In this document: positions 12,790 through 39,281 of the stretch, piece after piece
How positions within the stretch are numbered: position 1 is the first letter of the stretch
Layout: the number at the start of each line of letters is the position of its first letter
DNA from: Zygnema circumcarinatum SAG 698-1b
Taxonomy: Eukaryota; Plantae; Zygnematophyceae
Assembly: GCA_037447605.1 (NCBI GenBank)
Contig: CM074806.1
Location: 868,001-932,000, forward strand
Direction of reading: 5' to 3'
DNA length: 64,000 nt
Notes under the pieces: model-generated
Database searches by the model: none
What the model was told of the DNA's origin: nothing
The model's input: the letters and a program-made list of their open reading frames with translations, nothing else
Position numbers and translations under genes: made by a program

Positions 12790-16540
<3,751 letters not shown>

Positions 16541-17133: not shown

Positions 17134-18657
17134 TTAAACAACAGTGATCTGCCCCTGCATCCACGGGTGAGGTGGGCAGTGGAAGCCAAAAACTCCCTTC
17201 TGAGTGAATGTGTAGCTGTAGGTGAAGGGCGGAAACTTAAGATCCCAGCCTCCTCCAACGCCTTGGAACATATTCCGCGCTTCATCATCATCTGCGGAAT
17301 TACAGAAACAAAGATATATTGAAGGTCAATTCCTCGGAGAACTATCCACCAGCAACCTTTAAAATTCATTCATTCTAATGTAAGGACATTCACTAGCTTC
17401 ACATTGCTTGAACCAAGTAAACTGCATACCTTGAAAGCCGTGTGGTCCGTCCAAGTACTCCCATTTCACTGTGGTTCCTACGCTGACTGTGGCGGACGAC
17501 TCCGCCGGCATCACATCATAGTACCACTTTAGGTTCACCACTTGCGGGGGAGGAGGAGAGAGCTTTGCTGCAGCATGGGGCACCCAAGCACAGGAAACAG
17601 AGGGCCATTTAGGGTTACAGTATTGGGAGGGGAGAGACGGCTGCCGTCGACACGATAATGTACGAACAAGCCTCTGCATTGATTAATTCGGTCCACTGGT
17701 AAAACACTAATTGATGAGTCCCAAAAACAAAAGAGGTAAAGGGCGAGTGCACGTACAAGGCGGAGGCGACTTTTTCATCGGAGGGGGGGTCGACTTTTTC
17801 ATCGGAGGGGGGGTCGACTTCTTCATCGGAGGGGGGGTCGACTTTTTCATCGGAGGGGGGGTCGACTTTTTCATCGGAGGAGGGGTCGACTTTTTCATTG
17901 GCGGCGGCGGAGGCTTATTCGTTACCGCTGCAGCGACCCCCAAGGCAAAACCGCCATCATCAACAGCATTACACGCAAATGCATGGTCGTACATACACAT
18001 CCGCATACATACATGCACAGAGGCATGCATGCGCACAAGCACACGCCCCCGCCCATGCGTGTGCTCTTCTATGCATGGTGCGTGTTCCATACATCGACAA
18101 ATGTACTCGTATGCCAAACACAAAGGCCACCGCAGAGACGTACCAAGTCTGCGGGCGGAGCGGAGCATCTCCACGCCGGCGCCCGCCGTAGATTCGGTCG
18201 CTGCCAATATGAGCACCCCGCATTTGTGTGAGAAACGTTAGCCACACGGCATGCCGCAGCACACCAAGCAGAAGAGGGTTGGAGCAGAGAGCCTGTCATC
18301 CAGCGGAACACGCGAAATTGAGCAAGTAGTGACTGCCGCGAGTCGAGGGCTGACAAAAGGGCAAAATGCGGCCTACCCTCTTCCAGTCGCCGCACGAGGC
18401 CATTCCCCGCCTCTCCCGCGCTGACATCGGCTTCTGCATGTGCCATTACATCACCACAAGCCACTTTACATCACATCACCTCACATTGCATCACATCGCC
18501 TCACATTGCATCACATCCAGGCCGTTACAGGAAGGCGAGGGGCACACCAAGTAAGCGAGAGCCTACCCGAAGTGACGGAAACGACGAAGAGGAGCAGCAG
18601 GAGTGCGCCGCAGGCCGACATCTGGACAGCGCGGCGGTGCATAGCCATGGCGGCCAT
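17134..18657 (-). CDS. Secreted extensin-like repeat + type-1 blue-copper (amicyanin-like cupredoxin) protein, copy 1 (223 aa)
   Basis: Six exons with phase-1 GT-AG introns: 18657-18567, 18433-18377, 18200-18144, 17927-17757, 17567-17430, 17291-17134. The product is signal peptide, (PPPMKKST)x6, then ...TVSVGTTVKWEYLDGPHGFQ...YSYTFTQKGVFGFHCPPHPWMQGQITVV*. Confidence 0.88.
17757..17912 (-). repeat. 24-bp coding tandem repeat (PPPMKKST) x6
   Basis: Direct reading of GGGGTCGACTTTTTCATCGGAGGG-type units. Confidence 0.95.
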
Positions 18658-19198
18658 GGCTGCTCCGGTAGTGGAAGGAGAGCCGGAGAGTGGGCGAGAG
18701 AGAGGGGCGGAGGTGGGGAATAACTTCTTTTACCGCCTGCTGCGCCGCCTCTTTAGCCGCGGGTGCGTTGTTACGGTGACCAAATCCAGCGGACAATAGA
18801 CCTTACGGTACGGTACAGCCGTATGGTACGGCTGGATGGATCGTGTCCGTATACTATTGTCAACGAAGTTCAATGCGTAATGCTCTGACAGGGGAAGTTC
18901 AGCGAATGAAATGGCGCCACGTGACAAAATGTTAAACTGGTAAATGTTCATAAAAGCACCAGGACGCTACAAGTACAGTATCCGCAGTACGGACTTGCCT
19001 GTTCCTAGAGCCCGCCCGCCCGTGCCCGCGGCCCGCGAGAGGGCCTCGCTCGGTCACGCGAGTCAACCGGACGGGACCGACAAAACGCGGGTGCCGCTGC
19101 GGCCACGTGAAAGGACTCTGTTGGGCCACGTGGTCGCCGTACGAGGGTGAGGGCGGCAGCAGCCAGAGGCAGGACCGACTGTTGGGGGCGGCGAGGCG

Positions 19199-19283
19199 GC
19201 GGATCCCATAGAATTCCGCAGCTAAGCGCCAGTGCGCAGGAATAGTACTGGGATGGGTGACCTCTCTGGAACTGTTGCACCCG
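19199..19283 (+). pseudogene. 5'-truncated 5S rRNA-derived sequence
   Basis: GGATCCCATAGAATTCCGCAGCTAAGCG...TAGTACTGGGATGGGTGACCTC...TGTTGCACCC aligns with plant 5S rRNA from nt ~29 to the end, including A-box- and C-box-like segments. Confidence 0.8.
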
Positions 19284-20075
19284 AAAAAAGCTTTTGCTTT
19301 TCTGAACTTCAAGAAAAAGCACAAAAAGATGGAAGATGTCTCTGAACTTAAACGACTCTTTTTTGCTTTTTTTTTCCTTTGTTTTTTCTCTTTTCCAAGG
19401 CCGACTATAACTTGAAATGTGAAACTTCAAAATGAGCCTACAGGCAAGCAGTGCATGCATGCATACAACCAAGCAGGCAAGCAGTGCATGCATGCATGCG
19501 ATGGCGCGGGGGACAAATGGCGAAAAGGAGCGCTCGTTCACCTTCCAAATTTGCACTCCGGCGCCGTGTGTTGCTGAACGAGAAACACGTAGGTGGCCCC
19601 GTAGGCTGGAACTGCCAACGGGCCAATGCCGCCACATACCTCCATGGAACGCCGCCCTCCGTGGGTTCCATGGCGGCGAGGCCGCCCCCTCTCAACGGTC
19701 CTCCGTCCACATAGACTCTCATCCGCGAGCGGACGTGGCGCCACAAAGCTCACACGTGCTGCTCGTCCCCTGCGTCCGTCAGAGTGTCCTTGACGACCTC
19801 CAAGAGCATACGTTTTGAGACGCCGGTCGCTTGTTTTTTTCAAAAAAGCGCGTTTTCAATATCTCGTGCTTAGCCACTTGCAGGCTTTCCTTCAAGCTCA
19901 CCTTTTCGTTGGTTGTTTTATTTCTTTTAAAAGGCAGAGAGCGGTTGTACAGGGAGTGATATTTTTATGCTTGTATCTGAAACTTTCGGCCTTTTTTACA
20001 GCAGGAGCTTCGTTTCTTCTTTTTTAAGAAGTTCAAGAAATTGGCTAGTTCTTACATCCGCAGGGAAAAGCAACC

Positions 20076-22021
20076 ATGGCTTCTCTGCTCTTTCAGCAAG
20101 CAGTTGTCGCTCCGTCTTCATTTGTAACGCAGCGTTTCCACCATGGCTTCTGTCCTTGTCGTGCTCCCGCCCTGGCTTTGAAGAAGACGACCATCTCAAC
20201 AATCGGTTTGAATGCTGTTCGAGCAAGCGGAGAAGGTGAAGACATTCCTAAGGAGGATCACACGAAAAAAAGGTAGAATTGCGTCAAACAAATTGAAAGA
20301 AACCTTCAAGAATGAAGGATGTTCTATTCAGTAATCAGTGTCTGGCGCTAGCTCTTTGAATAATTGTGTTAAATCAGTCTGAAATTGCTTCCCTGCTGAC
20401 AGCTATATTCAGTGTTGCTCTGCGTTGGACAAGCTGACGATGCCTTTTTTTATCGGTCGGATGCGTTTGTCGCCGCTTGTGTGATGTTTGGCATGTGCGT
20501 CATCATCGCCATGTTTTCCTTTTTTTGGAGATTCTGTGTGTTAGAGTGCAGCTCAACTTCAATTGTAGTTTCCTGAGCCATAAAAACTGCTTATGTTGGC
20601 TTCATTAGGATTTCCAGAGAGGAATTATCGACTTAACGTCATCCGTTAAAAAATTTAAAATGTTCAAGGTCTTCTTCTTATGTCCTTGTTGTACTGCAGT
20701 TTTGAAGACGCTATTATTGTTGCAGTCAGTTTAGTAAAGGCTTGAGATTTGTTTCTAGGAGGATAGCCAAAATCACCTCTCTGGTCGACACTGTTCGGGT
20801 TACTTGTCTGCTTATATCAACAGCTTACCATAAACTAGTAATTCTCTTACGAGCAAATTAGAATATAAATTTGCAGTGCACGTACAACATCAGAGCAGCA
20901 CCGAAAAAAAGTATGAATTGAAATTCTCCTGGCTTCGCATAGGCTGCTGGCATGGTGCATCTCATCTTTTTATGGCGAGTTCACCTGAGAATGAGCTGCG
21001 GAATCGAGCATTCTGAAAAGCTCATCTGAAAGCCTTGCAACCTGCATATTGTGGAGCCTGCGTTCTTTCTAAACTGTTATCATTCTCTCTTTGCACAGTA
21101 ACCTTTGCTTCCAAGACTAGTCGAGTGGGCCACACCCGGCCCCAGCATTTCGACAGTGGTCTTTGCAAAAGTCAACCGGGCTGTCACTCTCAGAGCACAC
21201 GTGTAGCAATAAGTCTCTGCAAGATGGCTGACGGGGTTTCTCTTTGCTGTTCATGTTTGGCAGCATCAACGAAAGCTGCAATGGTGGAATTCAGAGAATG
21301 ACTTCTGTTGCAGTGGCTCTTCTAGCAGCTGGCACGCTTTTGATGATGCCAGCTGGCGATGCCCTTGCTGCAAAGTCAGGAGGGCGCGTTGGTGGTTCCG
21401 CTTTTCGATCCTCTCCTCCACCATCAAGATCTGCTCCACGTCCGCCTCCTCAAGTCAACAGGTCAAGGTATAATTTTGTCACTCTTTATGGAACAGTGAG
21501 GACACCTGTACTTGTTGAAGTGGTTAATTTTTGTGAAGGAATGTGATTTCTGCCTCGCCGTTCATAAATCTAAACATTTAGAAAAAACCGATCAAGATAT
21601 AGAGGCAAAGCAATTCCTTCGTGAAGCCTTCAAATGCTGGCAAGTTCAGGCATTCACAGAAGCTATCCTCTCATTAAGATAGCCTGTTGTGAGAAAACTG
21701 TTCTGGATTGGTTGACAGTCTGAACATGAACCGTCATACCATTTGTCTGACTATGAACCTTGGGACTGCTGCAGGACAAGTGTATTTATTAGTCCGCCAG
21801 CGATTGCACCTCCCATTTTTGGCTATGCTCCAACCCCGTTCTTTGGAGGATTTTCCCCTTTCTCTCCTTCCTATGGTGGATACTCGTATGGCCCTACTGT
21901 CGCAGTTACCGGGGGAGGCGGCGGCCTGTTTTCGTTTCTGTTTTTCTTTGTGATTGCTGGTGTGGTCTTCAACGTTATTCGCAGCCTTTTTAGAGGACCA
22001 CGGGATGACGATTATGATTGA
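20076..22021 (+). CDS. Small plastid-type Gly/Pro-rich membrane protein (AAKSGGRVGG family; resembles Arabidopsis At5g57345 and the N-terminus of DUF1517 proteins)
   Basis: Three exons (~20076-20272, ~21264-21468, ~21775-22021). Transit-peptide-like start, ALAAKSGGRVGGSAFRSS, a Pro/Gly/Tyr-rich segment, a TM helix and an acidic C-terminus (RDDDYD*). The family assignment is from recall. Confidence 0.75.
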
Positions 22022-22707
22022 AGCACCCTTTGACTGCTTTTGAGCATCTGCGGAAAATTTGTTTAGCCGAGTTGACAGAGAAATGCCTTTTTTCTCTCCA
22101 CCAGGAGTTCAATGAGTGGCTTACAGCACCTGTTTGGTTTGGCCACTTGTTTTTTTCGGGGGGTTGTGTTGCAACAGATAAAGCTTTAGAGAACGGGAAA
22201 AGCAATTGAAATTTTGACGAAACTTTGCGAGTGTGTGAAATACTATATTTTAGGATCAGGAAAACCGTGTCTAGCAAAGTAGGGAGGCGTCGATTCTATA
22301 ATATCGGAGTATATTATAGTGATGTTTCCCTTCATACGCAATGTTAAGAGTGGTTTATGATTTCACATGTGCGTGTTGCTTTCGAACTTGCTTGGTACTT
22401 GCTGACCTTCTCCTTCGTCCTTGTTTCCCTCTCACTCTCTTTCTCCTGTCTTTTCATCTTCTCCATCTCCTCCCTCCATTTCCCTCGCCCTCGCTGCCTT
22501 TCCCTCTTCGGGCTTTACCGTGCCATTGCCATTCACCTCATCCTTCATTTCCCCTCATCCCATCCATAAAGCCATGCCCTTGTCCAGCAATACATTTTCA
22601 TTCGTCTTTCCGAGAAATGGGTGCAAGTGATAACAGGAACCGAATGGCAGGCTTGTCTGACTACAGAAGCTCCTTTTCTGATCGGTTTTTGAGACTGACC
22701 TGGGATA

Positions 22708-24395
22708 CCATTTCAGCGGATATTGTTATTTTTTACCCCTCGTGTTAAAGCTGTCCATTACTGCTGATGTTCTCGCATGCTGTTCTGCCCTTTTGAACTT
22801 GTGCAGCTTCCAGCCGTACTTTCTGAAGGCCTGACTGTGGTTGTATCCCCCCTCCTTTCCCTCATACAAGACCAAGTTACGGCGTTAGTTCATGAGAGAG
22901 GCATTCCTGCAACATTCCTGTCCTCCTTGCAGACTTCACAACAAGCATTCAGCGTTATCCAAGAATTGAAGTAAGGCCTTCACTTGCTTTCCTTGTGGCT
23001 TCCACGTGTGTATGAGCCAAAGTATGCATGCCAGCTGTCTCCCTGAAGACGTGTGTTGTGGCACAATCGATTGAATTCTCCTTCAACGATGCATTCATCG
23101 CGATTGCATATTGCAAGAATTTGATTCTAACTGTTGTGCAGAAAACAACGTCCCACATGCAAGTTGCTCTATGTGACTCCAGAAAGGATTGCCGGTAGCC
23201 CATCCTTCCAAAGAATTCTCGAACAGCTGCATTCTAGGGTTAGGCCCAACTTTCCTTCCCTTGGAGCTAATCAACCACTCACTAGAGAGCAGCGAGTTTC
23301 CTCGCTACATGAACTTCCACACTTTAAATGAAGCCTCCATTTCCGTTGAATATTTTGACTTTTCTAAACTCTGGTTGTTCCTGGCTGAGCAGGGGCAGCT
23401 GGCCCGCTTCGTTATCGATGAAGCTCATTGTGTGAGGTAGTATTAACCATTTCTATATACAGCTTTTCCAGATGTACAGCTTACAACTTCAAGCTCTTTT
23501 TGCTTCTTACGAGCGTGAAGGCTGAGCTCGTCATAAAGTCAGCTTAGACGTTGTAGGGTTCTCCGGCTTGTGCAGCCAACGGGGAGTGGAAGCCAGAGTG
23601 GAATCGTCGATTGTCTGTCAACGAACGAATGCATTCGAGTGTGGGAGTATCTCTGCAAGGAGTTGAAGCTCAATGTGGGATACTACCGTGCAGGCTTGTC
23701 ATGCATAGCATGCCCAAGTCCATTGAGGGCTACTATCAAGAATCGGGTCGGGCCGGACGAGACGGTTCGTCTGCAGGCTGTTTAGTTTTGTATGGAAAGA
23801 GGGATATCTCGCGCATTATCTGTATGCTCAGGAAAGGCGGGCTGGGCAAAGGGAGCTTTCGACTAGGGATGGAGCAAGCCAAAGCTATGCAGGCCTACTG
23901 TGCTGACCAGGTACACCGCACTGCAGGACAAAGAGCCTCCCTCCCGGCCCTCCCCCCCTCCCTCCCCCTCTCCTCCCCCTCCCCTTCCACACATCCCCCT
24001 CCCTTCCCTCCCTCTCTTCCCTCCCCCTCCATACTTCTTCCCTCTCCCTCCTTTGAAACGGATCTGTTTACGTTTCTCATGACCACAATTCATGACTTTT
24101 CACGAGCTCATTATGCGCAGTAATGTCGCTGATGCCACCTTCTCCTGAGCCATGCTTGTTTCATGGCTGCAGACAGACTTGTGGCTAGAAGCTGAGTGTG
24201 GGGTCGTTGGCTGTTTCTATGGCTGCAGATGAAATGCCGACGGCAGATGCTGCTCGGGCATTTTGGCGAAGCATTTGATGCGGCTGCTTGCAGTGGCGGA
24301 ACTAACAGATGCGACAACTGCAGTGACTCGCTGGGCAACTAAATCGGAGGAGCATCTGGAAGACTTTTAAAAAGCTTGCAAAGCAGACTGGAGGA
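22708..24395 (+). pseudogene. Truncated duplicate of RecQl1 (3' part)
   Basis: Near-identical to 14040-16570 but lacks the 5' exons, has two internal deletions (junctions ~23585 and ~23700) and an earlier TAA at 24340-24342. Confidence 0.9.
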
Positions 24396-25056
24396 CGAGG
24401 TTAATGGATGGATGTTAATGGTAGCATCCTTTTCATCCAAGTGGCGTCAGCGTGGCATCCATTGCACGGCGATGGCCTCGTGACGACCAGGTCTCGCGGC
24501 TCAACTCGATTTCAAAGACTTTGCGTGGCTATGCCACATGCTTACATTGGCAGCAGTGGACGCCCGTGGTTTGATGGAACCATCATGTTGTCGTTGAAGG
24601 TGATGATGATGTTGTTGTTGATGATGATGATGAGGATGACGATGACGATAATTAGTTATCTAAAGACTTGAGAGGGAGGCAGGGCTTCCTCCCGATAAAT
24701 CACACTATAGCTGGCATGCACTTAGCATATGGCAAATCTCAGAAGTCAACCTTCGATAACAAACACGTTCAATCATGAACACAAACACACACCGGGTCAG
24801 TGCTCTTGGCATCCAACGGCTTCGTTGTGCTTCGAATAAAGTGCGGTACCAGTACATGGTGTGCAGATGCAAAGGGTCCTCTCCAACCACAGAGCGCAAC
24901 CTGACCAGAATTACCTCGCACAAGAAAAGCCATTGAGTTACATTATTCAAGTACCGGCGCCAAAGGCTTTACCCTTTTGGTCCTACTACTTTCGACCGCT
25001 CCCACCCAAATAGATTACATAATAAGATCCACCGGCAGTGGGGCCGCTACTGCTGT

Positions 25057-26624
25057 TTAAACAACAGTGATCTGCCCCTGCATGAACGGGTGAGGTGGGC
25101 AGTGGAAGCCAAAAACTCCCTTCTGAGTGAATGTGTAGCTGTAGGTGAAGGGCGGAAACTGAATATCCCAGCCTCCTCCAGGGCCTTGGAACATATTCCG
25201 CGCTGCATCATCATCTGCGGAATTCCAGAAACAAAGATATATTGAAGGTCAATTCCTCGGAGCACTATCCACCAGCAACCTTTAAATTTCATTCATTCTG
25301 ATGTACGCACATTCACTAGCTTCACATCGCTTGAACCAAGTAAACTGCTTATCCAGTCAGTTGGCATCCCAGATTGCCACGTGTTCTCTGCGAATCGCTA
25401 GCTGTCCATGGTTCTGTCACATACCTTGAATGCCGTGCGGGCCGTCCAAAAACTCCCAATTCACTGTGGTGCCTACGCTCACTGTGGCGGAGGACTCCGC
25501 CGCCGTCACATCAAAGTACCACTTTAGGTTCACCACTTGCTGGGGAGGAGGAGAGAGCTTTGCTGCAGCATGGGGCACCCAAGCACAGGAAACTGAGGGC
25601 CATTTAGGGTTACAGTATTGGGAGGGGAGAGACGGCTGCCATCGACACGATAATGTACGAACAAGCCTCTGCATTGATTAATTCGGTCCACTGGTAAAAC
25701 ACTAATTGATGAGTCCCAAAAACAAAAGAGGTAAAGGCCGAGTGCGCGTACGAGGCGGAGGCGACTTTTTCTTCGGAGGGGGCGACTTTTTCTTCGGAGG
25801 AGGGGGCGACTTTTTCTTCGGAGGAGGGGGCAACTTTTTCTTTGGCGGCGGAGGCTTCCTCCTTACCGCTGCAGTGATCCCCAAGGCAAAACCGCCATCA
25901 TCAACAGCATTACACGCGAATGCATGGTCGTACATACACATCCGCATGCATACATGCACAGAGGCATGCATGCGCCACGCCCCCGCTCATGCGTGCGTTT
26001 ATCATGCATGGTGCGTGTTCCATACATCGACAAATGTACTCGTATGCCAAACACAAAGGCCACCGCAGAGACGTACCAAGTCTGCGGGCGGAGCGGAGCA
26101 TCTCCACGCCGGCGCCCGCCGTAGATTCGGTCGCTGCCAATATGAGCACCCCGCGCTTGTGTGAGAAAGGTTGCGCCACACGGCATGCCGCGGCACATTA
26201 TCAGAGGGAAGCAGAAGAGGGTTTGGGCAGAGAGCCTGTGAGCATCCAGCAGAACACGCGCAAACTGAGCTAGTAGGGACTGCCGCGAGTCAAGTGCTGA
26301 CAAAAGGGCAAAATGCGGCCTACCCTCTTCCAGTCGCCGCACGAGGCCATTCCCCGCCTCTCCCGCGCTGACATCGGCTTCTGCATGTGCCATTACATCA
26401 CCACACGCCTCGTTACATCACATCGCCTCACATTGCATCACATCGCCTCCACTTGCATCACATCGCCTCACATTTCCTCACATCCCGGCCGTTACAGGAA
26501 TACGAGGGGCACACCAAGCAAGCGAGAGCCTACCCGAAGTGACGGACACGACGAAGAGGAGCAGCAGGAGCGCGCCGCAGGCCGACATCTGGAGAGCGCG
26601 GCGGTGCATCGCCATGGCGGCCAT
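25057..26624 (-). CDS. Extensin-like repeat + amicyanin-like cupredoxin protein, copy 2
   Basis: Same six-exon layout; four PPP(P)KKK[S/L] units; C-terminus FHCPPHPFMQGQITVV*; splice sites retained. Confidence 0.85.
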
Positions 26625-27331
26625 GGCTGCTTCGGCGAAGGAAGGGGGGAGAGAGTGAGGGAGAGAGAGAGGATGAGAGAGGAGGAGAGAGCGCCACATC
26701 AACCGCCTGCAGCGCCGCCTCTCTAGCCGCGGGCGCCTTGTACGGCCTCCGTACAGGGCCTACTGTACAGTACAGTACAGTAATACAAAATCGAGCGGAC
26801 AGAGGACCGTACGGTATCATACAGCCGTGTGGTACGGCAGGGTGTCCGTACATATTTGTCAACGAAGCTTAATGCGCACTGCTCGGACAGGGGCGGTTCG
26901 GCGACTGAATTGACGCCACGTGGCAGAATGTAAATTGGTCAAGGTCCGTAGAAGCAGCAGGACGCTACGAGTAAAAGGCGGCAGTGTAAGACACGACAAT
27001 TCTCAGTACCGAATAGTTTATAGAATGCGTATTTTATTAAGCTTAAAGCAGCACCAGTATAGAGAACTCTTTCTGATATGTGTTTGACGGGAGATTCTTC
27101 TTCCTCTGTACGGACTTGCCTGTCCCTAGAGCCCGCCCGCCCGCGTTCGGGGACCGCGAAGAGGGCCTCGCCCGGTCACGCGAGTCAACCGGACGGGACC
27201 GCCGGAACGCGGGTGCGGCTACGGCCACGTGTCCGGATTCTATAGGGCAACGTGCCCACAGTACAGTACGACAAAGGGGGCGGCAGCAGCCAGCTCGTTG
27301 GCAGGACCGATAGTTGGGGGTGGCGAGGCGG

Positions 27332-27416
27332 CGGATCTAATCAGAATTCCGCAGCTAAGCGCCACTGCGCAGAAATCGTACTGGGACGGGTGAGCTCCCC
27401 GGAACTATTGCACCCG
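27332..27416 (+). pseudogene. 5'-truncated 5S rRNA-derived sequence (copy 2)
   Basis: GGATCTAATCAGAATTCCGCAGCTAAGCG...GTACTGGGACGGGTGAGCTCC...TTGCACCC, paralogous to 19199-19283. Confidence 0.7.
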
Positions 27417-27530
27417 AAAAAGGCTTGTGTTTTTCTAAACGTCCCATTTTTTTTATTTTTTATTTTCTCTTTTCTTAAGGCGTCTACAACTTGAAATGTG
27501 AAACGTCAACATGAGCCTAAGCACGCATGC

Positions 27531-27773
27531 AGGTCTGAACCGTAGGTCCATGTGATGAAGGAGCTTGAACGCAACTTGTGAAAACCCTTGGGTAGTGTGA
27601 TCAAGGGCAAGCACAGTTTAGGTGGGGAGGAAAGTAATAGAATGGTATACAAGGAGTTGTATGGCCTGGTACCTAAATCCGCGGTTGTCTTTTAAAGGTT
27701 AAAAAACACGGTTGAACCGTGTGGGTACCGGAAGGTCTTGAGATCAAACCCTGCTTGAGGCTTGTTTGCTACA
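27531..27773 (+). mobile_element. Diverged partial TRIM (internal region, PPT and 3' LTR)
   Basis: Similar to the reverse complement of ~43583-43815; PPT AGGTGGGGAGGAA; ends in GCTACA. Confidence 0.65.
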
Positions 27774-27779
27774 GAAGTG

Positions 27780-28220: not shown

Positions 28221-28222
28221 TC

Positions 28223-29200
28223 TGTTGATGTATAGCGCACATCAAGGTGTTGGTACTTAGTTCCTAGCATGAATGTTATCCGGGAGATCAATGTGCTGGT
28301 ATAGGAACAATGTCCATGCATGAATGGTCATGTTTGGTGTAGGACCGTACAAGGGGGGTGCCCATATTGTTAGGGCACAGTACGGTAGGTCTAAGGATGC
28401 TCTAGGGTCGTAGGTTACGGCTTAGGCTTAGACCGTACCAAAGGGGGTGCGCGGAATGCGCTTGAACGAATGGAGCGCGGCGTCGTTATGGACGCGGCGA
28501 TCTTTGGCGCGAGCGGTGGATCTGCACGAAGGGACATGATTGGTCGCGACAGCGTGCAGAACGCGACGCAGTCTTCGTGCGTGACGTGATGCATTGTTCG
28601 GCAGTGTCGGTGGAAACATTGGAGATGTCGGCAGTGAATGAGGAGGCGACACGTGGACCCGTCCGCGGCTCTGACGAGGTCAACTGAGAAGGGGACCGAG
28701 TCGCGGGCCGCAAACATGTACGGCTGGGCGGCGGCACAGCACGGACGACCTTTGTGTAGGTCGGTGCTGGCGTAGGTTCACGTGAGGCCGCGACGCTGGC
28801 TGTTGAACGGCCTGCTTAGCTGTTCACTGCATGCACTCGCTAGTGCGTCTGTGACATGACATTGAGTGGTCACATCACGCCGGCCGCCATTGTTTAAGAG
28901 GAAGTTAAGCATAGCTCTCCTACTCACTCTCTCTGAATGTTATGCTGCTCGGCCTATGTTTTTTAGGAAAATTATGAGGAGGCTCAGGCCTAGAGGAGTC
29001 CGGCCTTATGTATGAAGGTCAAGAAGGAACTAGCTCTCATCATTCTAAGCTTTAGTGAAAGAGTTAGATGATGTGTCCCTCAAGGGTTGAGGTAGAGGAG
29101 GAGTTCATGTAGGCAAGTAATGCTTGGCTACTGTAGTAGGGGTGTAAGCTATCTATCAGAGGATAGGATAGTGCTCATGTGAGGAGGAGAATCTAGCTTA
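28223..29200 (+). mobile_element. LTR family A fragment
   Basis: Starts TGTTGATGTATAG and is homologous to the first several hundred bp of the solo LTR at 49699; the end is not defined. Confidence 0.65.
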
Positions 29201-29229
29201 ATATGTAGATTTCCTAAGGAGCTTGTATT

Positions 29230-31100
29230 AGGGGGGATCAGACCTTGACCATCGCCAAACCAATTTCGTAAGCCCGTCGGGCCTATTCCGCCGTGTACGG
29301 CAGGCCTTTTTCGCAAAAAATGGCCGTTCGGTAGTTTCGGGCGCCGCGAATTCAAGAAAATAATTATTTTACCTTCGTATCTCCGAGCCAGGTCTGACTA
29401 GGGATGGATTAGTTACGATTATATATTATATATTAGATTATACAACTGTGACGAATAGATAACGGCTGATATATATTAATTTACAACGCCTTTACAACAT
29501 GTACGGTCGTACGGTCGTACGACTGAACGGGATTATGTGGCCCGAGCACGAGCAGACAGAAAACCAGGCGAACGCATTTCGCAACGCCAACGCCAAAACG
29601 ACCTAATTTTGGTATGGTACGATCGTACTGTCGTACGGTCGTTAATTGTTCAAAGCGAGTGGGTATAATATATGTAATAAAGTGTTTTACTTTGTAATAT
29701 ATTACTAAATTTAAACCCGTTGTAAATTATATAATATATTCGGAATTTATAACGCGGGCCATCCCTAGGTCTGACCCCCCCCTTTTCGCCTCGCCGCGCT
29801 CCCTCCGCCGCCCGCCGGCCGCCGCCCGCCGCCCTCCGTTTTGTCGCCAAGCGCGCCTAACGCGTGCGAGAGGTGTTAGTGTTAGTGTGCTATAGTTAGA
29901 CATTGTATGGGTTCACACTAACATTGTTGTGGTCCTCAGTTGGGAAACATGAGATCTGCTAGTAGTAGTCCTAGGAAATACGGTCGGGCCAAATGTCGGT
30001 GGCCCGTACGCTTTTCGGGCGCGGAGAATGTCGGTGATGTCGGCGGACCCGCGTCAGACCCTTAGTGCGGTCCGCGGACTGTGACGAGGTCAACTACGGA
30101 GGAGACCGAGTCAGCAGCCACGCAGACAAGTGTGAACAACGCGGAAATGCGATGACGGAGATTTTGTCGCTGACGGGCGCTGGATGTGTACTGCCGCTGG
30201 CCAATCGAACATGTGGCGCTGGCGCGACGCTGCATCGCGACGGGCAAGCGGGCGGAAGCTTCTCATACGAATCCGGACGCATAAGTTCGCGATGGGCGCG
30301 AATCACTTTGGACGCACCTAACTAGGCCCGCCGCTGGTGTAGGTTTCTTCTTACGTAAGGACCGCAATGCCGATGTTGAACGGCATTCGGTCGGCCGGAA
30401 CGATGTAGAAGTGCCGTGACGTGACATCGGTCAACTAGGAAGATGTCACATAACACGGCAATGGCGGAATATAGGGTATAGCTTGATTATGTAGGATAAC
30501 CACATTAGACTACTGTGACCTCGCGGACTTATTCCCAGGTCAGCTGGTGTTAAGTCAGGCCGCCCGCTGTGTCGCAAGGTAGTAAGTGGCGAGAAGTAGC
30601 TAGTGAGAGGGGAGAACTTCATGTGGGTGACATTCTTATTTGGCGCGGTTTGTCGCGGTTTTCTCCCACTCTCGCGGTGTGATTTCCTACCGCCCAACTC
30701 GTTCATTCGGTGGAGTTATGGGCTATGAGTGAAGTGAGATAGAGTGAGAGAAAGTGAAGATGTCTTCATCGGTGGGAACCGGAGTTCCAATGGAGGGCGA
30801 CACGCGAGGTGGCGCCGGGAGCAATGAACAGACCCACGCTCCAACAAGAGGCACTCGCACGTGCGTGACGCGCATGGCGACAAGGCGGGGCACGATTCCT
30901 CATCGGCGGAAAGCTGGAATTTCGAATCGCAGGGCCTCCGGAGGCCCTGCGTTTCGGCGAGCGGATTTCGGAAATTTGGGGCCATTTTTGTAACCTATTC
31001 CGTAAGACTTTGATCTGACATGATTGTGTTCGGGGAGCCGCTACTTTCCGATCCAAACCCCGTGAAACGGAATCCAACGACCCTTCCGCGTGATGGTGGA
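29230..31100. mobile_element. AGGGGG-TCAGACCTTGACCATCGC MITE, interrupted by an AGGGATGG MITE (29400-29766) and a solo LTR
   Basis: Same family as 55927-56495 in the opposite orientation; preceded by ATT; the right end is lost. Confidence 0.75.
29874..30846 (+). mobile_element. Solo LTR, Copia family B (973 bp)
   Basis: TGTTAG...CCAACA; 5-bp TSD AGAGG at 29869-29873 and 30847-30851; homologous to the LTR at 33264-34224. Confidence 0.9.
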
Positions 31101-31849
31101 AATTTCGGAATTTCGGTAGTTTACGGTCAGCGTCCCGGCACCTCACACCCAGCGAAATTTAGGAGTGCTGCCTTCAAGAAATTCGCCCCGATTTTGCCGT
31201 AAAACCACTTTTTAAACGCAACCGCTAATCAAAGGGGGCGACTTAGCTTCACAAAGGTAATTTTATTCTCAATGTAGTGTACGATTTCACGGGCAAACAA
31301 AGTGGTTTTCGGCTTAAAACGTTGTTTCACACTCCTTCGCAACAGATACGCACCTTTTTCGCCGAAATACGGATGGTGATTGAAATGTATTTGAAGCGGC
31401 GTATGCCTGGCGCGCATCGTTTACATGATTGCCGCGTATAGCGACGCTGGAAGTATAGCGGTACCGCATACGGCAAAACGAGATGCATGGAGTCCGCGAC
31501 GGTAGCTCTTAATGACGGAAAACCTACGTAAAAAGATAGGCACATAACGTAGCCGCGGTTTCGTGAAAAAATCTGTCGCTTTTACTCGCCATTTTCAACG
31601 CCCGCTGATTCCTTACAACTTTTCGCTGGGCTCGCTTCACACGCCACGGGTCCCAAAACATACTTGTCACGCCATATGTTGCCGCTGACCAATCATGTCG
31701 CCCACGCGTTTCCCGTGAGCATCTCAGACGCTACAGTTTCGCGACATTTTTGCCGCGCGAAAGCGGCAGCGTAGACATCAGATGGGGTCTCAGCCGCACC
31801 TAAATACGCGTCCGCCAAAACATGGCGATCCCGCCGCGAGTAGTCCTTA

Positions 31850-34224
31850 GGAACACGGTCGGGCCAAATGTCGGTGGTCTGCATTTCGTTTGCGAACGTG
31901 GCGTATGTCGGCGGAACTGGCCAGCGTAATTTTTAGCGGCGTCCGCGCGACTTACCGGTGGTCAACTACGCAGAGACCTTGTTCTCAGCCTAATGCCGGA
32001 CAGCGGAACGGCGCGTGAAATGCGCGATGATCGAGATTTTGTCGCTGACGGCGCTGATGTGTACGGGCGCTGACCGAACATGTGATATTGCTGGCTACGG
32101 ACGCTGCGACGGACGGGCGCTGAAGTTCTCAAGGCTTCAACGGACGCATGTTTCCGGGGATTGGCGGAACTGCATCGACGACCTAACTAGGGCCTGCCGG
32201 GCCGGGCGTAGTTTACGGCTGACCGCAATGCCGCACGTTGAACGCGGCACTGGCCGGGCCGGAACGCGATAAGAGGGAGCGGCCGTGACGTGACATCGGT
32301 CAACAAGGAAGATGTCACATAACACGGCCATGGCGGTCTATAGGGTTTAGCTTGATTATGTAGGATAACCACATTAGACTACTGTATTCCCGTGACTTAT
32401 TCTGTGCCTACTCGTGTTGCTGGGCTGCCCTGCTTGTGTCGCAAGGTAGTGAGTAAGGGGAGAAGTAGCTAGTGAGAGGGGGAGAACTTCATGTGGGTGA
32501 CATTCTTATTATAAAGGAGTTTTAGAGCCGTGAGCTTTCTCCTACACTTTCTCGTGTGTGATTTCCGCTGTGCTCATCTCTATNNNNNNNNNNGCTATCG
32601 GAAGTTTAATGTACCTAATGATTGGTACTCGACCGGACTTGGCGAAAGCTGTGAGCGCCGCGAGTCGGTTCATGGAGAATCCCGGCCCTGAGCATTGGGA
32701 GGCCGTAAAGCGAATCTTTCGGTTCGTACGGGGGACCTTGGAGTACGGACTCCGTTACGAGAGAGGGCCGAACAGAGTCATCGGGTACACCGACTCTGAC
32801 TGGGGAGGTGACGTGGACACATCGCGATCGACCTCCGGATTTGTTTACCTGAACGCAGGTGGAGCGATCTCATGGAGCTCGAAGCTACAGGATTCGGTTG
32901 CGTTGTCTAGCACCGAAGGCGAGTACATGGGAGCATGTCACGCAGCGAAGGAGGGAGTTTGGTTCCAACATTTCTTTGATGAGTGTAAGAGGCCACAACG
33001 TCCCTTGACTTTGTTCACGGATAACCAGTCGTCCATTGCTCTTGTTGAAAACCCTGTGTTTCATAAGAGAACAAAGCACATCAGAGTGCAATACCATTAT
33101 GTGCGAGAATTGGTAGAGGAGGGGATGATTGTTGTGAAGTTCGTGGGGACGAAGGAGCAGGCTGCGGATATGTTGACTAAGGGAGTTAGCGGGGAGACAC
33201 TACTAGTGAATAGCAGACTCATTGGGCTAGGGCCCATGAGGAACTGAGTCCCAAGAGGGGGATTGTTAGTGTTAGTGTGCTATAGTTAGACATTGTATGG
33301 GTTCACACTAACATTGTTGTGGTCCTCAGTTGGGAAACATGAGATGCCGTGGTAGTCCTAGAGGCTCTGATTAGGGCAAATAGCCGGTGGTCCGTCACCT
33401 GCGGCTTTTGGCCTTGAGGAGAATATGCGGCGATAGCCGGTAGGAACGCGTCGGAGACCCTTAGATATAGCGATCATGGGACTCACGGCGAGGTCAGCTA
33501 CGGAGGCGGAGTCGGCGACCCGCAGCGGGCAGTGTGAAACAGCCTTGAAATGCGATAGCGGAAATTTACGTCAGCGGGCAGCGGATAATATCTGGCCTTG
33601 AAATCGAACACATACCGCGCGAAGCTGTCTGGACGAAGCGGCGGAAGATGCGCGCTTCGAGCGAGGCGGCAAAGATTCGAATGGCGGAAGCATACGGGCG
33701 GCCTAGCAAATTGTGGCGTAGGTTTCTGAGACGCAATGCTGGATGTTGAGCAGCGTACCGGCTGCGAAGCATGAGGGCGGCGTGGCCGTGACATCGGTCA
33801 ACTAGGAAGATGTCATGTAACACGGCCATGGCGGTATATAGGGTTTAGCTTGATTATGTAGGATAACCACATTAGACTACTGTAGTCCCGTGACTTATTC
33901 TGTGCCTGCTCGTGTTGCTGGGCTGCCCTGCTTGTGTCGCAAGGTAGTGAGTAAGGGGAGAAGTAGCTAGTGAGAGGGGGAGAACTTCATGTGGGTGACA
34001 TTCTTATTATAAAGGAGTTTTAGAGTCGAGCTTTCTCCTACACTTTCTCGTGTGTGATTTCCGCTGTGCTCATCTCTGTGTTCATTCTGTGAGTTATGGG
34101 CTATGAGTGAAGTGAGATAGAGTGAGAGAAAGTGAAGATGTCTTCATCGGTGGGAACCGGAGTTCCAATGGAGGGCGACACGCGAGGTGGCGCCGGGAGC
34201 AGTGAACAGACCCACGCTCCAACA
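31850..34224 (+). mobile_element. Ty1/Copia element B: partial 5' LTR, gap, RT/RNase H end (32594-33247), PPT, 3' LTR 33264-34224
   Basis: [49 protein letters not shown] motifs; PPT AAGAGGGGGA immediately before TGTTAG. Confidence 0.9.
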
Positions 34225-34271
34225 CATTTCAAATCACTATCCGTACATCCGACAAAAAAAGGTCTATATTT

Positions 34272-35307
34272 AGGAAAATGATACAGCGGCCCCACTTTTT
34301 GGATATCGGCGCCCCCTTTTGGGAAAAATTGTACTTCTTTTTTTGGCTAATCACTCCCCCCCTTGGATCTTTCTGGAGGAGAGATCTTGTAGACAATCGG
34401 ACCCCGCGCCTCGCGCGCAGGATCCGACCGTGCACCGACGTACGGCCCCGCGCATCGCGGCGTGGCCCGCGAGATGCGGCGAGCCTACGGAAAAGTTGTC
34501 CTCACCTGACCCGTTTGGGTCAGAGGTTGCCACGTGGCAGTCTGCCATTGGACAGCCCTGCTGCCGGTCCCCCATGCCGATACAGTGGACCCCCATAATA
34601 TTTTCGCCATGGCTTCGGCAAATACTGGGCGAAAATATTGTAATTTGCAAATATAAGGTCCGTGTTACCAATAGGCGAGTGGTATTATGTTAGAGTTCAT
34701 GTCTGTTCGTACGTATCGTATCGTATCGTATCGTCACGTGATTTAGATACATGAGCTCCTATTGGTGCCGTACGTATACCGTACGACTTAGATATTTTAT
34801 TCGTACTTACCGTACAGCGTAAAAGCGTGACCCATGTTTGAAAGCCGTTTCGATTAACAGATTTTGTATTGGAGAATAGGTCAGATTAGGTTAACACCCC
34901 TAATACGTTAACATTGAGTTACCGTACAAAAAGGTGGTTTCGGCAAAATCGGGGCGAATTTCTTGGGGACGCACTGTACAAGGTGGAAAATATTATGGGG
35001 GTCCACTGTATCGGCATGGGGGACCGGTAGCAGGGATGTCCAATGGCAGACTGCCACGTGGCAACCTCTGACCCATGAGGACAACGTTTCGTAGGCTCGC
35101 CGCATCTCGCGGGCCGCGCCGCGATGCGCGGCGCCGTACGTCGGTGCACGGTCGGATCCTGCGCGCGAGGCGCGGGGTCCGATTGTCTACAAGATCTCTC
35201 CTCCCGAAAGATCCAAGGGGGGGAGTGATTAGCCAAAAAAAGAAGTACAATTTTTCCCAAAAGGGGGCGCCGATATCCAAAAAGTGGGGCCGCTGTATCA
35301 TTTTCCT
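34272..35307. mobile_element. Non-autonomous foldback-like DNA element with ~300-bp TIRs (AGGAAAATGATACAGCGG...)
   Basis: Long inverted termini; further copies at 42952-44444, ~41770-42030 and ~35500-36790. Confidence 0.75.
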
Positions 35308-37451
35308 AAATATAGACCTTTTTTTGTCGGATGTACGGATAGTGATTTGAAATGTGTTGGAGCGTGGGTCTGTTCACTGCTCCCGGCGCCACCTCGCGTG
35401 TCGCCCTCCATTGGAACTCCGGTTCCCACCGATGAAGACATCTTCACTTTCTCTCACTCTATCTCACTTCACTCATAGCCCATANNNNNNNNNNGGGGGG
35501 GGGGGGGGGGTGAATAGCCAAAAAAAAAAAGTACATTTTTCCCAAAAGGGGGCGCTGATATCCAAAAAGTGGGGCCGCTGTATCATTTTCCTATTTTCGC
35601 CCCAATTTTGCCGAAACCACTTTTTTGTACGGTAACTTGTGTTAGCCGTACTGCTCGTACTGCTCGTACTGTTCGTACTGTTCGTACTATCTGTACTAGC
35701 CGTTACGGGCTTACGCAAAACGCACCTAATCTCCCCGCTCGTGCCGCCGTAAGAGGCGCTCGCTCTTCTCCCCGTCTTCTTGACTTCAATACGATAAGAT
35801 ACGATACGATACGGTCAATACGATACGAAACTCCCCGATGGTTGGATGACGACAGTATGCACGACAGTATAAGCGTCACGATATGTCACGATACGATACG
35901 ATGTTAACTGATACAGTACGATACGATACGATTTGGTACGGTACGATACGTACGGTTCAACATGAACTCTAACATAATACCGCCCGTCTATTCGTAACAC
36001 GAACCTTATATATGCAAATTTAATATTTTCGCCTCATTTTACCCGGAACCAGGGTGGAAAATATGAGGACCCCCTACTGTATGATATCGTACCGTATCGT
36101 ACTATCTCGTTTAGTATCGTATCGTATCGTGCCATATCGTGACGCATGGACGTAGTTTTCCGCTTTCTGTTGTTCGTCTCAGCTCGTACGGCTCGTACGG
36201 ACAATACCCTATCGGGGCGTTTCGTATCGTATCGCCTAGTATCGTACAGTATCGTACCGTTCGTTTCGTATCGTATCGTATCGAAGCTAGGAAGAAGGGG
36301 AGAAGAGCGGGCGCCTCTTACGGCGGCACGAGCGGGGAGATTAGGTGAGTTTTGCGTAAGCCCGTAACGGCTAGTACAGATAGTACGGGCAGTACGAATA
36401 GTACGGCTAACACAAGTGACCGTACAAAAAGGTGGTTTCGGCAAAATCGGGGCGAAAATATAGAGGACGCACTCCTTAGGGTGGTAAATACGAGGACCCC
36501 CAACTGTAGTCGTTACGGGCTTTAGCAAAACTCACAGAATCTTCCCGCACGTGCCGCGGTAAGTGCGGGCGCTCGCTCCTCTTCCCAAATTCTTCTTGGT
36601 TTCGATACGAAACGATATGCTGGGGTACTGGGCGATACGCCACATAAGGCACGATATGGTGCGGTACGATACGTAACGACGTACATGAACTCTAACATAA
36701 TACCGCCCGCCGATTGGTAACACGAACCTTATATTTGCAAAATCGAGATTTTCGCCCCATATTTGCCAAAACCATGGCGAAAATATGACGACCCCCTACT
36801 GTACACCGGCCGTATGGTAATGCCGTACGGTGGGACACGGTGTGCGCAGAGCACCATGGTGGGCGTAGCCACCGCTACATGCATGCATACAAGTAGGCAA
36901 GCAGTGCATGCAAGCGTGCAGGCATGCAGGCAGGCAAGCAGTGCGTGCAGGCGAACAGCCAGGCACTGCATGTGCATGCAGGTACGCAGGCAGGCAAGCC
37001 ATCATGTTGTTTTTCAAGAAGATGTTGTTGTTGATGATGATGATGACGAGTTTTCTAGAGACTTGAGAGGGAGGCAGGGCTTTCACCCGACAAATCAAAC
37101 TGGCTCGCCTACATTTAGCATACGGTAAATCTCGGAAGTTAACATACGATAACAAACACATTTTTTAACATGAACACAAACACACACCGGAACAGTGCTC
37201 TTGGCATCCAACGGCTTAGTTGTGCTTCGAATAAAGTGTGGTACTTGCACATGGTGTGCAGATGCAAAGGGTCCTCTCGAAGTAAAGAGCACAACCTGAC
37301 CAGATTTACCTCGCACAGGAAACGCCATTGAGTTACATTATTGAAGTACCGGTGTCAAAGGCTTTACCCTTTTGGTCCTACTACTTTCGACCGCTCCCAT
37401 CCAAATAGATTCCATAATAAGATCCACCGGCAGTAGGGCCGGTACTGCTGT

Positions 37452-39281
37452 TTAAACAACAGTGATCTGCCCCTGCATGAACGGGTGAGGTGGGCAGTGG
37501 AAGCCAAACACTCCCTTCTGAGTGAATGTGTAGCTGTAGGTGAAGGGCGGAAACTGAATATCCCAGCCTCCTCCAGGGCCTTGGAACATATCCCGCTCTG
37601 CATCATCATCTGCGGAATTCCAGAAACAAAGATATATTGAAGGTCAATTCCTCGGAGCACTATCCACTAACAACCTTCAAATTTCATTCATTCTGATGTA
37701 CGGACAGTCACTAGCTTCACATTGCTTGAACCAAAAAGACAGCTTATCCAGTCAGTTGGCATCCCAGATTGCCACGTGTTCGCTGCGACTCGCTAGCTGT
37801 CCGTGGTTCTGTCGCATACCTTGAATGCCGTGCGGGCCGTCCAAAAACTCCCAATTCACTGTGGTGCCTACGCTCACTGTGACAAAGGACTCCGCCGCCG
37901 TCACATCAAAGTACCACTTTAGGTTCACCACTTGCGGGGGAGGTGGAGCGAGCATGGCTGCAGCATGGGGCACCCAAGATCAGAAAACAGAGGACGATTT
38001 AGGTTTACAGTATTGGGAGGGGAGAGACGGCTGCCATCGACACGATAATGTACGAACAAGCCTCTGCATTGATTAATTCGGTCCACTGGTAAAACACTAA
38101 TTGATGAGTCCCAAAAACAAAAGAGGTAAAGGCCGAGTACACGTACACGGCGGAGGCGACATTATCATCGGAGGGGGTGACTTTTTCTTCGGAGGAGGGG
38201 GCGACTTTTTCTTTGGAGGAGGCGACTTTTTCTTCGGAGGGGGCGACTTTTTCTTTGGAGGAGGAGGCGACTTTTTCTTTGGAGGAGGAGGCGACTTTTT
38301 CTTTGGAGGAGGAGGCGACTTTTTCTTTGGAGGAGGAGGCGACTTTTTCTTTGGAGGAGGAGGCGGCTTTTTCTTTGGACGAGGGGGCGACTTTTTCTTT
38401 GGCGGCGGAGGCTTCCTCCTTACCGCTGCAGTGATCCCCAAGGCAAAACCGCCATCATCAACAGCATTACACGCGAATGCATGGTCGTACATACACATCC
38501 GCATGCATACATGCACAGAGGCATGCATGCGCCACGCCCCCGCTCATGCGTGCGTTTATCATGCATGGTGCGTGTTCCATTCGTCGCCAAATGTACTCGT
38601 ATGCCAAACACAAAGGCCACCGCAGAGACGTACCAAGTCTGCGGGCGGAGCGGAGCATCTCCACGCCGGCGCCCGCCGTAGATTCGGTCGCTGCCAATAT
38701 GAGCACCCCGCGCTTGTGTGAGAAAGGTTGCGCCACACGGCATGCCGCGGCACACCATCAGAGGGAAGCAGACGAGGGTTTGGGCAGAGAGCCTGTGAGC
38801 ATCCAGCAGAACACGCGCAAACTGAGCTAGTAGGGACTGCCGCGAGTCAAGTGCTGACAAAAGGGCAAAATGCGGCCTACCCTCTTCCAGTCGCCGCACG
38901 AGGCCATTCCCCGCCTCTCCCGCGCTGACATCGGCTTCTGCATGTGCCATTACATCACCACACGCCTCGTTACATCACATCGCCTCACATTGCATCACAT
39001 CGCCTCACATTGCATCACATCGCCTCACATTGCATCACATCGTCTCACATTGCATCACATCACTTCACATTGCATCAAATCACCTCACATTGCATCACAT
39101 CGCCTCACATTGCGTCAGATCGCCTCACATTGCGTCACATCCCGGCAATGACAGGAAGTCGAGGGGCACACCAAGCAAGCGAGAGCCTACCCGAAATGAC
39201 GGACACGACGAAGAGGAGCAGCAGGAACGCGCCGCAGGCCGACATCTGGAGAGCGCGGCGGTGCATCGCCATGGCGGCCAT
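37452..39281 (-). CDS. Extensin-like repeat + amicyanin-like cupredoxin protein, copy 3
   Basis: Same exon layout; ten KKK-containing units, mostly SPPPPKKK; DGPHGIQ and FHCPPHPFMQGQITVV* intact. Confidence 0.85.
38975..39140. repeat. 20-bp intronic minisatellite (CACATCGCCTCACATTGCAT)n
   Basis: About 8 units in intron 1 of copy 3, versus about 2-3 in copies 1 and 2. Confidence 0.9.

Follow-up and report, generated by a model that had tools for sequence, protein, structure and literature searches.

Three minus-strand genes of six exons each, A, B and C, were modelled in a 64-kb window, the whole stretch of DNA that was analysed (Table 1). We read them as recent tandem paralogues, members of a small family of zygnematophyte type whose products, secreted type-1 (blue) copper proteins, would serve as a wall- or mucilage-held one-electron copper shuttle working like uclacyanins. 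Taken as a whole, this reading appears to us about evenly balanced between right and wrong.

Table 1. Positions of the three gene copies, their parts and the surrounding duplicated blocks in the window
Feature	Position	Strand	Remarks and basis
Gene copy A	17134-18657	minus	six exons, 223 aa; exon model and all five joints in RNA-like contigs
Copy A exons	18657-18567, 18433-18377, 18200-18144, 17927-17757, 17567-17430, 17291-17134	minus	exon model
A exon 1	18567-18657	minus	signal-peptide-like segment (basic n-region, hydrophobic core); hydropathy
A exon 2	18377-18433	minus	57-nt propeptide exon, RRL motif close to end; identical in A, B, C
A exon 3	18144-18200	minus	57-nt propeptide exon, RRL at end; identical in A, B, C
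A exon 4	17757-17927	minus	Lys/Pro-rich rod of 24-nt repeats
A exon 5	17430-17567	minus	rod end and first half of cupredoxin; first His ligand codon 17442-17440
A exon 6	17134-17291	minus	second half of cupredoxin and stop codon; Cys 17178-17176, His 17169-17167, Met 17160-17158; PF00127
3' UTR region of A	16878-17133	minus	A-type contigs reach 16992
Gene copy B	25057-26624	minus	six exons, 205 aa; exon model and B-specific spliced contigs
Copy B exons	26624-26534, 26380-26324, 26133-26077, 25868-25752, 25562-25425, 25214-25057	minus	exon model
Copy B ligands (first base of codon)	His 25437, Cys 25101, His 25092, Met 25083	minus	
Gene copy C	37452-39281	minus	longest rod; six exons, 259 aa; C-specific exon 4/5 joint and intron-2 letters
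Copy C exons	39281-39191, 38937-38881, 38690-38634, 38425-38147, 37957-37820, 37609-37452	minus	exon model
Copy C ligands (first base of codon)	His 37832, Cys 37496, His 37487, Met 37478	minus	
Duplicated block around copy A, incl. part of RecQ-like gene	14040-19310		matches 22709-27443
Copy B block	24606-27040		matches 37001-39661

All 15 introns of the three genes are of the GT..AG type and in phase 1, and the reading frames contain no internal stops. Five of five copy A joints were found at the modelled places in RNA-like contigs from four runs of three studies (the runs were taken as RNA because they contain spliced joints, not from the run records), and read depth over copy A was confined almost wholly to exons. 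B-specific letters in the contigs match copy B exactly (13 in exon 5 and five in the covered part of exon 6), as do 3' UTR variants with a poly(A) end; aligned on the 3' UTR of A, a B-type transcript has its poly(A) end at the position corresponding to 16878. For copy C, one loose contig end fits the exon 4/5 joint, and the intron-2 letters are C-specific. The first-pass annotation had proposed six-exon, phase-1 models on the minus strand and a check of their splicing; the introns, the open frames and the exact A joints, together with the spliced variants of B and C, bear these models out.

An assembly artefact can be excluded, since the two N gaps between B and C (32584-32593 and 35485-35494) are intergenic and affect no exon or intron, exons and introns differ by a few per cent, the flanks are different and the spliced transcripts are copy-specific. 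Besides A, B and C, no further or degenerate copies were found within the 64-kb window. The copies lie among RecQ-like exons, a PPR gene and transposons. An internal duplication that gave rise to exons 2 and 3 was unsupported (only 21 of 57 positions identical).

Each product has a signal-like segment, a propeptide in which RRL occurs twice, a Lys/Pro rod and an acidic PF00127 head of 90 aa (pI 4.4-5.0); the chain has a mass of 22-27 kDa and one putative copper site. The highest 11-residue Kyte-Doolittle mean of the N-terminal segment is 3.2-3.4 in A, B and C, with an RR pair ahead of the hydrophobic stretch and a hydrophobic core from about residue 18. This pattern of hydropathy and charge would fit the signal peptide of chimeric extensins. 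No hydrophobic tail was found at the C-terminus (top 11-residue mean in the last 25 windows, 0.27-0.43), where the chain stops at its last strand. The rod measures 47-101 aa across the copies (21-39% of the chain) and holds 14-34 Lys or Arg, no acidic residue and no Tyr. The Lys-rich [S/T]PPP(P) repeats of the first-pass annotation are confirmed as a basic, proline-rich rod, with SPPP motif counts of four in B and nine in C; in copy A, however, the repeat is mostly K-K-S-T-P-P-P-M and just two true SP3 motifs are present. One of the cysteines of each chain lies in the domain, the other in the signal segment.

The ligands in A, B and C are the His of D-G-P-H, followed by C-P-P-H-P-[W/F]-M, so that all four type-1 positions are kept in every copy, as had been claimed. 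Profile searches of the window protein were run exon by exon, and the fold and some profile results rest on homologue domains. Exon 6 alone reached 25.7-27.7 bits with PF00127 (A 25.7; cut-off 21.2) and full-length homologues 24.9-74.7 bits. PF02298 gave no match either with the exons (E≤1) or with whole homologues (E≤0.1), which settles the choice between the two profiles in favour of PF00127. As a proxy for the fold of the window domain, we used the Mesotaenium domain closest to it (50-54% identity): the prediction (pLDDT 94.9) is a cupredoxin beta-sandwich, with Z 10-12 against a Nitrosopumilus cupredoxin, plastocyanins (10.5-11) and amicyanin, and Z 7-8.3 against phytocyanins. In 13 of 13 family domains, four of four ligand positions are kept, although the domains are mostly 31-54% identical between subgroups. 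This retention argues for selection on the metal site. Outside the ligands, the head seems to be under little recent constraint, as non-synonymous divergence between the A and B domains (13/212) equals that of the introns (45/844; Fisher p=0.62). The residue following the first His is Gly in A-C, Asn in amicyanin and Ser or Thr in the relatives. Residues at this position tune potential and stability (PMC12723479), and the copper site of A-C may thus be atypical.

The head had been called amicyanin-type. Amicyanin (Paracoccus denitrificans MauC) is indeed the best PDB sequence match of exon 6 (E 8e-7), A-C have a C-x2-H-x2-M loop in which Pro fills both positions, and six of seven loop residues of B and C, both prolines included, are like those of amicyanin, which differs in having Asn54 in place of Gly. 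With the amicyanin profile TIGR02657, however, exon 6 alone, which is part of the domain, scored 31-33 bits against a cut-off of 110, homologue domains also stayed far below that cut-off (best E 6.6e-10; P0152, 23.7 bits), and a mau (methylamine dehydrogenase) gene context is absent around A-C. By these measures the head does not belong to the amicyanins; the likeness is limited to a short ligand loop that is missing in the relatives and common to many prokaryotic cupredoxins. Plastocyanin was rejected as well (TIGR02656, 17-24 bits against 87.85; a hydrophobic core at about residue 18 as opposed to a plastid bipartite transit peptide).

Free trees place the window domain among the algal domains, joined with Mesotaenium domain 3 (88/89) and away from amicyanin. 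The careful tree left out 37 redundant or long-branch rows, and its plastocyanins are phage ones only. The algal domains fell on one side of a branch in 56% of bootstrap trees (about 100 columns), and AU tests rejected neither a grouping of the window domain with amicyanin (p 0.098) nor one of the algal domains with phage plastocyanins (p-AU 0.156). The best non-algal matches are Bacteroidota T9SS-exported Copper-bind proteins (PF00127 and PF18962; P0157 and P0160, E 5e-13 and 2e-11). They are exported too and gave the best Atlas structure match (TM 0.84), and P0157 and the window domain have a Trp-containing N-terminal strand in common; unlike A-C, they are bacterial and carry a T9SS sorting tail in place of the rod. 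The family profile gave 67 bits for one Bacteroidota secreted domain versus 15-19 bits for phage plastocyanins. Exon 6 had no match in phages and weak partial matches only in metagenomes. The best matches suggest horizontal transfer of the head from Bacteroidota; the trees fix no donor.

Homologues are Mesotaenium endlicherianum ME000243S04013 (P0008) and four EukProt transcriptome proteins (P0048, P0155, P0156 and P0152). They resemble A-C in a putative signal peptide, K/P-rich SPPP(P) rods, the domain subfamily (31-54% identical) and the four copper ligands, and share with the window domain a W-x3-V..A.AT..VG..V.W N-terminus and an F.G.GGG insert. They differ in having one to three domains before, between or after the rods, or, in P0156, no rod; the versions with several heads on rods fit a relay or scaffold. 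The first-pass annotation did not recognise the architecture and stressed its reverse order. No description of the A-C family was found in the literature searched, yet the layout is not unique, as P0152 has the same order with an RREL propeptide motif at the place of RRL; the rod comes first in A-C, but this is no rule of the family. The ligand loop is longer by one residue (C-x2-H-x3-M) in 10 of 10 homologous domains; it is possible, but rather unlikely, that the lineage of A-C regained an amicyanin-like short loop, which could make the potential pH-dependent at wall pH. The homologue searches covered proteins between 0.55 and 1.75 times as long as the query and sharing exact 5-mers with it, one search being dominated by Pro-rich candidates; within this scope no homologue from land plants, Chara or Closterium was found, which does not prove that none exists.

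In the shuttle reading, the chain would probably enter the ER by its signal peptide, as its hydropathy suggests, and then be cleaved at the RRL sites on its way through the secretory pathway, which would remove the propeptide. Hydroxylation would probably turn the K-K-(K)-S-P-P-P(P) rod into a polycationic stalk, extended as polyproline II over up to about 15-31 nm, and this stalk would attach to acidic pectin or mucilage by charge and not through Tyr cross-links. The head is predicted to be a domain of the plastocyanin/amicyanin class, probably of prokaryotic type, that phase-1 exon shuffling brought together with the rod. It would hold one copper by His-Cys-His-Met and pass single electrons from donors to acceptors located in the wall, for example phenolics, ascorbate or secreted oxidases. 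In support, amicyanin, whose ligand set and loop spacing are those of A-C, shuttles electrons (PMC12723479). The rodless P0156 would argue against tethering as a need of the family. What phytocyanins themselves do biochemically is not settled either (PMC7575197).

We consider it possible, but rather unlikely, that the proteins are extracellular copper buffers or scavengers, in which the rod holds high-affinity heads in wall or mucilage that capture trace copper or detoxify an excess, redox activity being incidental. The intact metal site is consistent with this, as are multi-head relatives, which would raise capacity, and CupA, EfeO and FtrB, metal handlers that share the fold (Z 7.9-9 with the Mesotaenium proxy). 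However, one copper per chain of this mass would be a costly sink, and no extra His/Met/Cys-rich metal motifs were found in the chains of A, B and C. GTAC is the core of copper-response elements, and five to eight such cores occur per 350 nt upstream of each ATG, which places these stretches in the top 2-11% of the window; as GTAC is over-represented throughout the window (334 versus 142 expected), this promoter signal is weak and uninformative as to copper response.

A role as a structural or adhesive matrix protein is equally unlikely. Here the rod would be the working part, an extensin-like polycation binding pectin or mucilage, and the cupredoxin a compact binding or oligomerising module. 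Rod length, free to vary among the copies, and the about neutral rate of head divergence between A and B agree with this. A purely structural module would, however, be expected to lose its Cys, as in the ENODLs, which lose copper binding (PMC4499708), and the family has kept its ligands throughout; moreover, P0156 retains the head without the rod.

That the head is a diffusible or surface signal freed by propeptide processing, a chemocyanin/plantacyanin-like cue for instance in conjugation, seems improbable to us. The RRL propeptide exons are invariant while the head diversifies (non-synonymous differences, 1/148 in the N-terminal part versus 13/212 in the domain; p=0.01), a pattern known in recognition proteins, but gene conversion can also account for identical exons. 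Three 2017 runs under the same species label contain nearly no words of the genes, which might mean conditional expression; these runs may be from another strain, and expression was seen in four runs of three studies. An organellar, plastocyanin-like carrier of the thylakoid lumen, to which the RR pair ahead of the hydrophobic stretch, the closeness in fold to plastocyanins and the unrejected clade with phage plastocyanins would point, is highly improbable, because the hydrophobic core begins too early for a stromal transit peptide to precede it, rods of the extensin type are a feature of the secretory pathway and the family profile favours the Bacteroidota domain over phage plastocyanins.

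Plant extracellular type-1 copper proteins have been taken to be phytocyanins (PF02298). When wall glycoproteins are surveyed by bioinformatics, PF02298 is the only such domain searched for (PMC12209756), and these surveys would therefore miss the A-C family, which may have arisen independently as a counterpart to the copper proteins in the cell walls of land plants. If its members are wall redox carriers, the sister group of land plants has reached this solution by convergence, and the proteins, being small and easy to express, offer a model for the role of apoplastic blue-copper proteins. The natural variants of the loop (C-x2-H-x2-M versus C-x2-H-x3-M) and of the residue after the first His (Gly, Ser or Thr) provide a comparative set for cupredoxin redox tuning.

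Among known systems, the phytocyanins (uclacyanins, plantacyanins and stellacyanins) are alike in combining a secreted type-1 copper domain with a wall-glycoprotein-like, proline-rich region. In uclacyanins such a domain is joined to one of the wall-glycoprotein type, and the site of action of UCC1/2 is a nanodomain of the wall (PMC4499708, PMC7575197). The His-Cys-His-Met ligands of uclacyanins and plantacyanins are those of A-C. In contrast to phytocyanins, A-C have a PF00127 domain, an extensin-type basic rod and a proxy fold that matches phytocyanins less well. They also lack the conserved disulfide Cys pair of phytocyanins (PMC4499708), having one Cys in the domain, and the C-terminal hydrophobic tail of a GPI signal, which is frequent but not universal in that family. 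The view that A-C are not phytocyanins therefore holds. Nor are they classical extensins, which have SPn throughout and Tyr cross-link motifs, given that their rod makes up only part of the chain and contains no Tyr. Chimeras with proline rods are a known class, the 'other chimeric EXTs', common in green algae (Liu et al. 2016, PMC4769139); copper, cupredoxin or plastocyanin heads go unmentioned in the main text of that study. A-C share with this class two or more SPPP motifs within a Pro-rich domain and a non-HRGP domain, here PF00127 and not LRR, kinase or formin, and probably the signal peptide, and differ in a rod without Tyr cross-link motifs. We conclude that A-C are an undescribed variant of the chimeric extensins.

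The minus-strand gene is present in three copies in the 64-kb window (A, 17134-18657; B, 25057-26624; C, 37452-39281), and a search of the same 64 kb for a fourth found none. Each copy has six exons, with borders set by anchors common to the copies, and the open frames encode 223 (A), 205 (B) and 259 (C) residues. All 15 introns are GT-AG and in phase 1, in agreement with the six-exon genes proposed in the first-pass annotation.

That annotation had also called for RNA evidence of splicing. We aligned contigs from three studies (four public runs) to 16300-19100. They span exons and UTRs and leave the introns almost uncovered, and all five joints of copy A fall at the predicted bases; the runs have no RNA label on record and were taken as RNA because of these spliced joints. 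A second contig class matches copy B exactly (13 defining differences in exon 5 and 5 in exon 6) and continues through B-type 3' UTR letters into poly(A). One loose contig end corresponds to the junction between exons 4 and 5 in copy C. We conclude that all three copies are real and transcribed; contig depth is unfit for ranking genes by expression level. Two contigs of run X3 extend for at least 255 letters unlike the window past the 5' end of exon 1 (18668, 18718), and these extensions could come from chimeric contigs, from an additional 5' exon or from a further paralogue outside the window.

Comparison of the window with itself revealed two tandem segmental duplications, in which the A block is repeated around B and the B block around C. 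The A block carries 3' exons of a RecQ-like gene, which is spliced and expressed where it adjoins copy A. These exons recur around B, a partial duplicate that travelled with the duplication producing this copy. N gaps (32584-32593 and 35485-35494) lie within the transposon-rich B-C spacer and affect none of the genes. A 1.5-kb repeat inserted between A and B (19405-20949) is found again, 90% identical, at the window end (62452-64000). One of the Ty1/copia copies contains a 1108-aa gag-pol ORF, and relatives of the foldback/MITE-like elements are dispersed at 41.8-46.1 kb.

Further features of the window
Feature	Position	Strand	Remark
Multi-exon PPR protein gene	about 6300-11800	-	PPR repeats in ORF 9659-10570
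RecQ-like helicase exons (Helicase_C end)	14040-16715 and 22709-24403	+	domain match
10/20-nt tandem repeat, intron 1 of each copy	18468-18517, 26416-26484, 38948-39141		2.5 to 8.4 units between copies
More diverged copia fragment	32594-33247		adjoins N gap
Foldback/MITE-like elements	34095-35484 and 35592-36460		398-nt arms 99% complementary; 175-nt arms 86% complementary
Short telomere-like ACCCTAAAA array	46140-46177		adjoins N gap
Two tandem Ty1/copia LTR retrotransposon copies	51298-61454	+	98-99% identical

The segment encoded by exon 1 combines a basic n-region with a hydrophobic core (11-residue hydropathy 3.2-3.4), a hydropathy and charge pattern consistent with an ER signal peptide. 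Exons 2 and 3 (57 nt each) are identical in all copies, and each encodes one RRL motif, located at the exon end or close to it. Secretory subtilases typically cleave propeptides at motifs of this kind, and we infer that they would do so here. Exon 4 is a 24-nt repeat encoding an extensin-like rod 47-101 residues long; Pro makes up 42-48% of it, 14-34 residues are basic, and neither acidic residues nor Tyr occur. Exons 5-6 encode a 90-residue acidic cupredoxin domain (pI 4.4-5.0), which closes the chain in A, B and C with no GPI-like tail after it. Exon 6 by itself exceeds the PF00127 cut-off, and the profile scan of the exons gave no match to PF02298, which answers the choice between these families posed in the annotation. 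The spliced models likewise bear out its Lys-rich Pro repeats, its ~90-aa tailless cupredoxin and the four type-1 Cu ligands (His-Cys-His-Met) in every copy.

Between A and B, exons 2-3 have zero differences against ~5% intron divergence (p 0.004). Non-synonymous changes in the domain number 13 over 212 sites, not below the intron rate (p 0.62). All ligands are kept despite this intron-like divergence. The numbers are small; the pattern may stem from selection on the head that is either relaxed or diversifying, or else from 5' gene conversion. A G-box/ABRE-like CACGTGGC lies ~270-300 nt upstream of all three ATGs (near 18920 for A), and several GTAC cores are conserved in the three promoters; as signals these elements are weak, the promoters being ~83% identical overall and GTAC enriched window-wide.

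Homologues were searched exon by exon, the joined protein being used in local computation only. Exon 6 found P0008 (Mesotaenium endlicherianum ME000243S04013), with a signal peptide and three cupredoxin domains separated by K/P rods, and the transcriptome protein P0048. Profile searches added P0151/P0155 (three domains), P0156 (signal peptide and a single domain, rodless) and P0152, whose layout equals that of the window proteins: signal peptide, short RREL propeptide, KKKSPPPPP rod and one C-terminal domain. Among the algal members no E value was above 5e-32, and among the next proteins none fell below 5e-13; this gap is somewhat overstated, as algal members contributed to the profile. The 'reverse order' of rod then head thus holds for the window genes and P0152, but on these sequences it is one arrangement among several in the family.

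His-Cys-His-Met is retained in 13/13 family domains. The ligand loop is C-x2-H-x2-M in the window genes, whereas all ten outside domains have C-x2-H-x3-M, and the first His is followed by Gly in the former and Ser/Thr in the latter (10/10). The label 'amicyanin-type' therefore fits in ligand set and loop spacing, but the likeness is a loop-length feature of the window lineage; this short length is common to many prokaryotic cupredoxins.

The Mesotaenium domain nearest the window domain (50-54% identical) has a confident predicted fold (pLDDT 94.9). This fold reaches Z 10-12 against a Nitrosopumilus cupredoxin, plastocyanins and amicyanin, and Z 7-8.3 against phytocyanins. The top non-algal matches, by sequence and by Atlas structure, are proteins of Bacteroidota that carry a T9SS export tail. 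In the tree, the window domain pairs with Mesotaenium domain 3 (support 88/89) within a nine-domain algal group (94/72) near the T9SS domains and distant from amicyanin and plastocyanin. AU tests did not reject grouping the window domain with amicyanin (p 0.098) or the algae with plastocyanin (p 0.156), and a bacterial origin of the algal domain is a lead, not a result. The Bacteroidota cupredoxins P0157, P0160, L002-L004 and L007 have, like the algal family, a first strand containing Trp and lack the F-x-P motif that is usual in that strand; two of them have a T9SS tail by Pfam.

Beyond the established gene structure, splicing, expression, domain family, ligand set, rod composition and homologues, we propose that the chain would be secreted and its propeptide then removed. 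The rod prolines would be hydroxylated and the rod held electrostatically by acidic pectin or mucilage, and the head would load Cu and transfer one electron at a time. We see an even chance that the protein is such a wall-held electron shuttle. That it is instead a Cu buffer seems unlikely, and equally so that it is a structural rod whose head serves for binding. A role as a signal is improbable, and one as an organellar carrier very improbable.

Amicyanin, the best solved relative of exon 6, binds copper through His53, Cys92, His95 and Met98, and mutations of its Pro94 hamper His95 flipping and raise the potential (PMC12723479). The Pro94 equivalent is kept in the window loop, so a pH-sensitive potential of the window head is a testable prediction; its actual value is uncertain because Gly occupies the Asn54 position, a difference from amicyanin. 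By the tests applied here, the window proteins do not qualify as phytocyanins, amicyanins or plastocyanins. They fit the 'other chimeric extensins', a catch-all class common in green algae (PMC4769139, PMC10762512), and the main text of neither paper mentions a copper head. The annotation regarded the architecture as seemingly undescribed; P0152 shares it, and we found no description of the family in the literature searched, which covers few subscription journals. We thus appear to have an undescribed domain combination inside a known class; it belongs to a small algal family, and its function is putative. Uclacyanins, in which a type-1 Cu domain is coupled to one of the wall-glycoprotein kind, function in a lignifying nanodomain of the wall (PMC4499708, PMC7575197), and by analogy the window proteins probably work like them.
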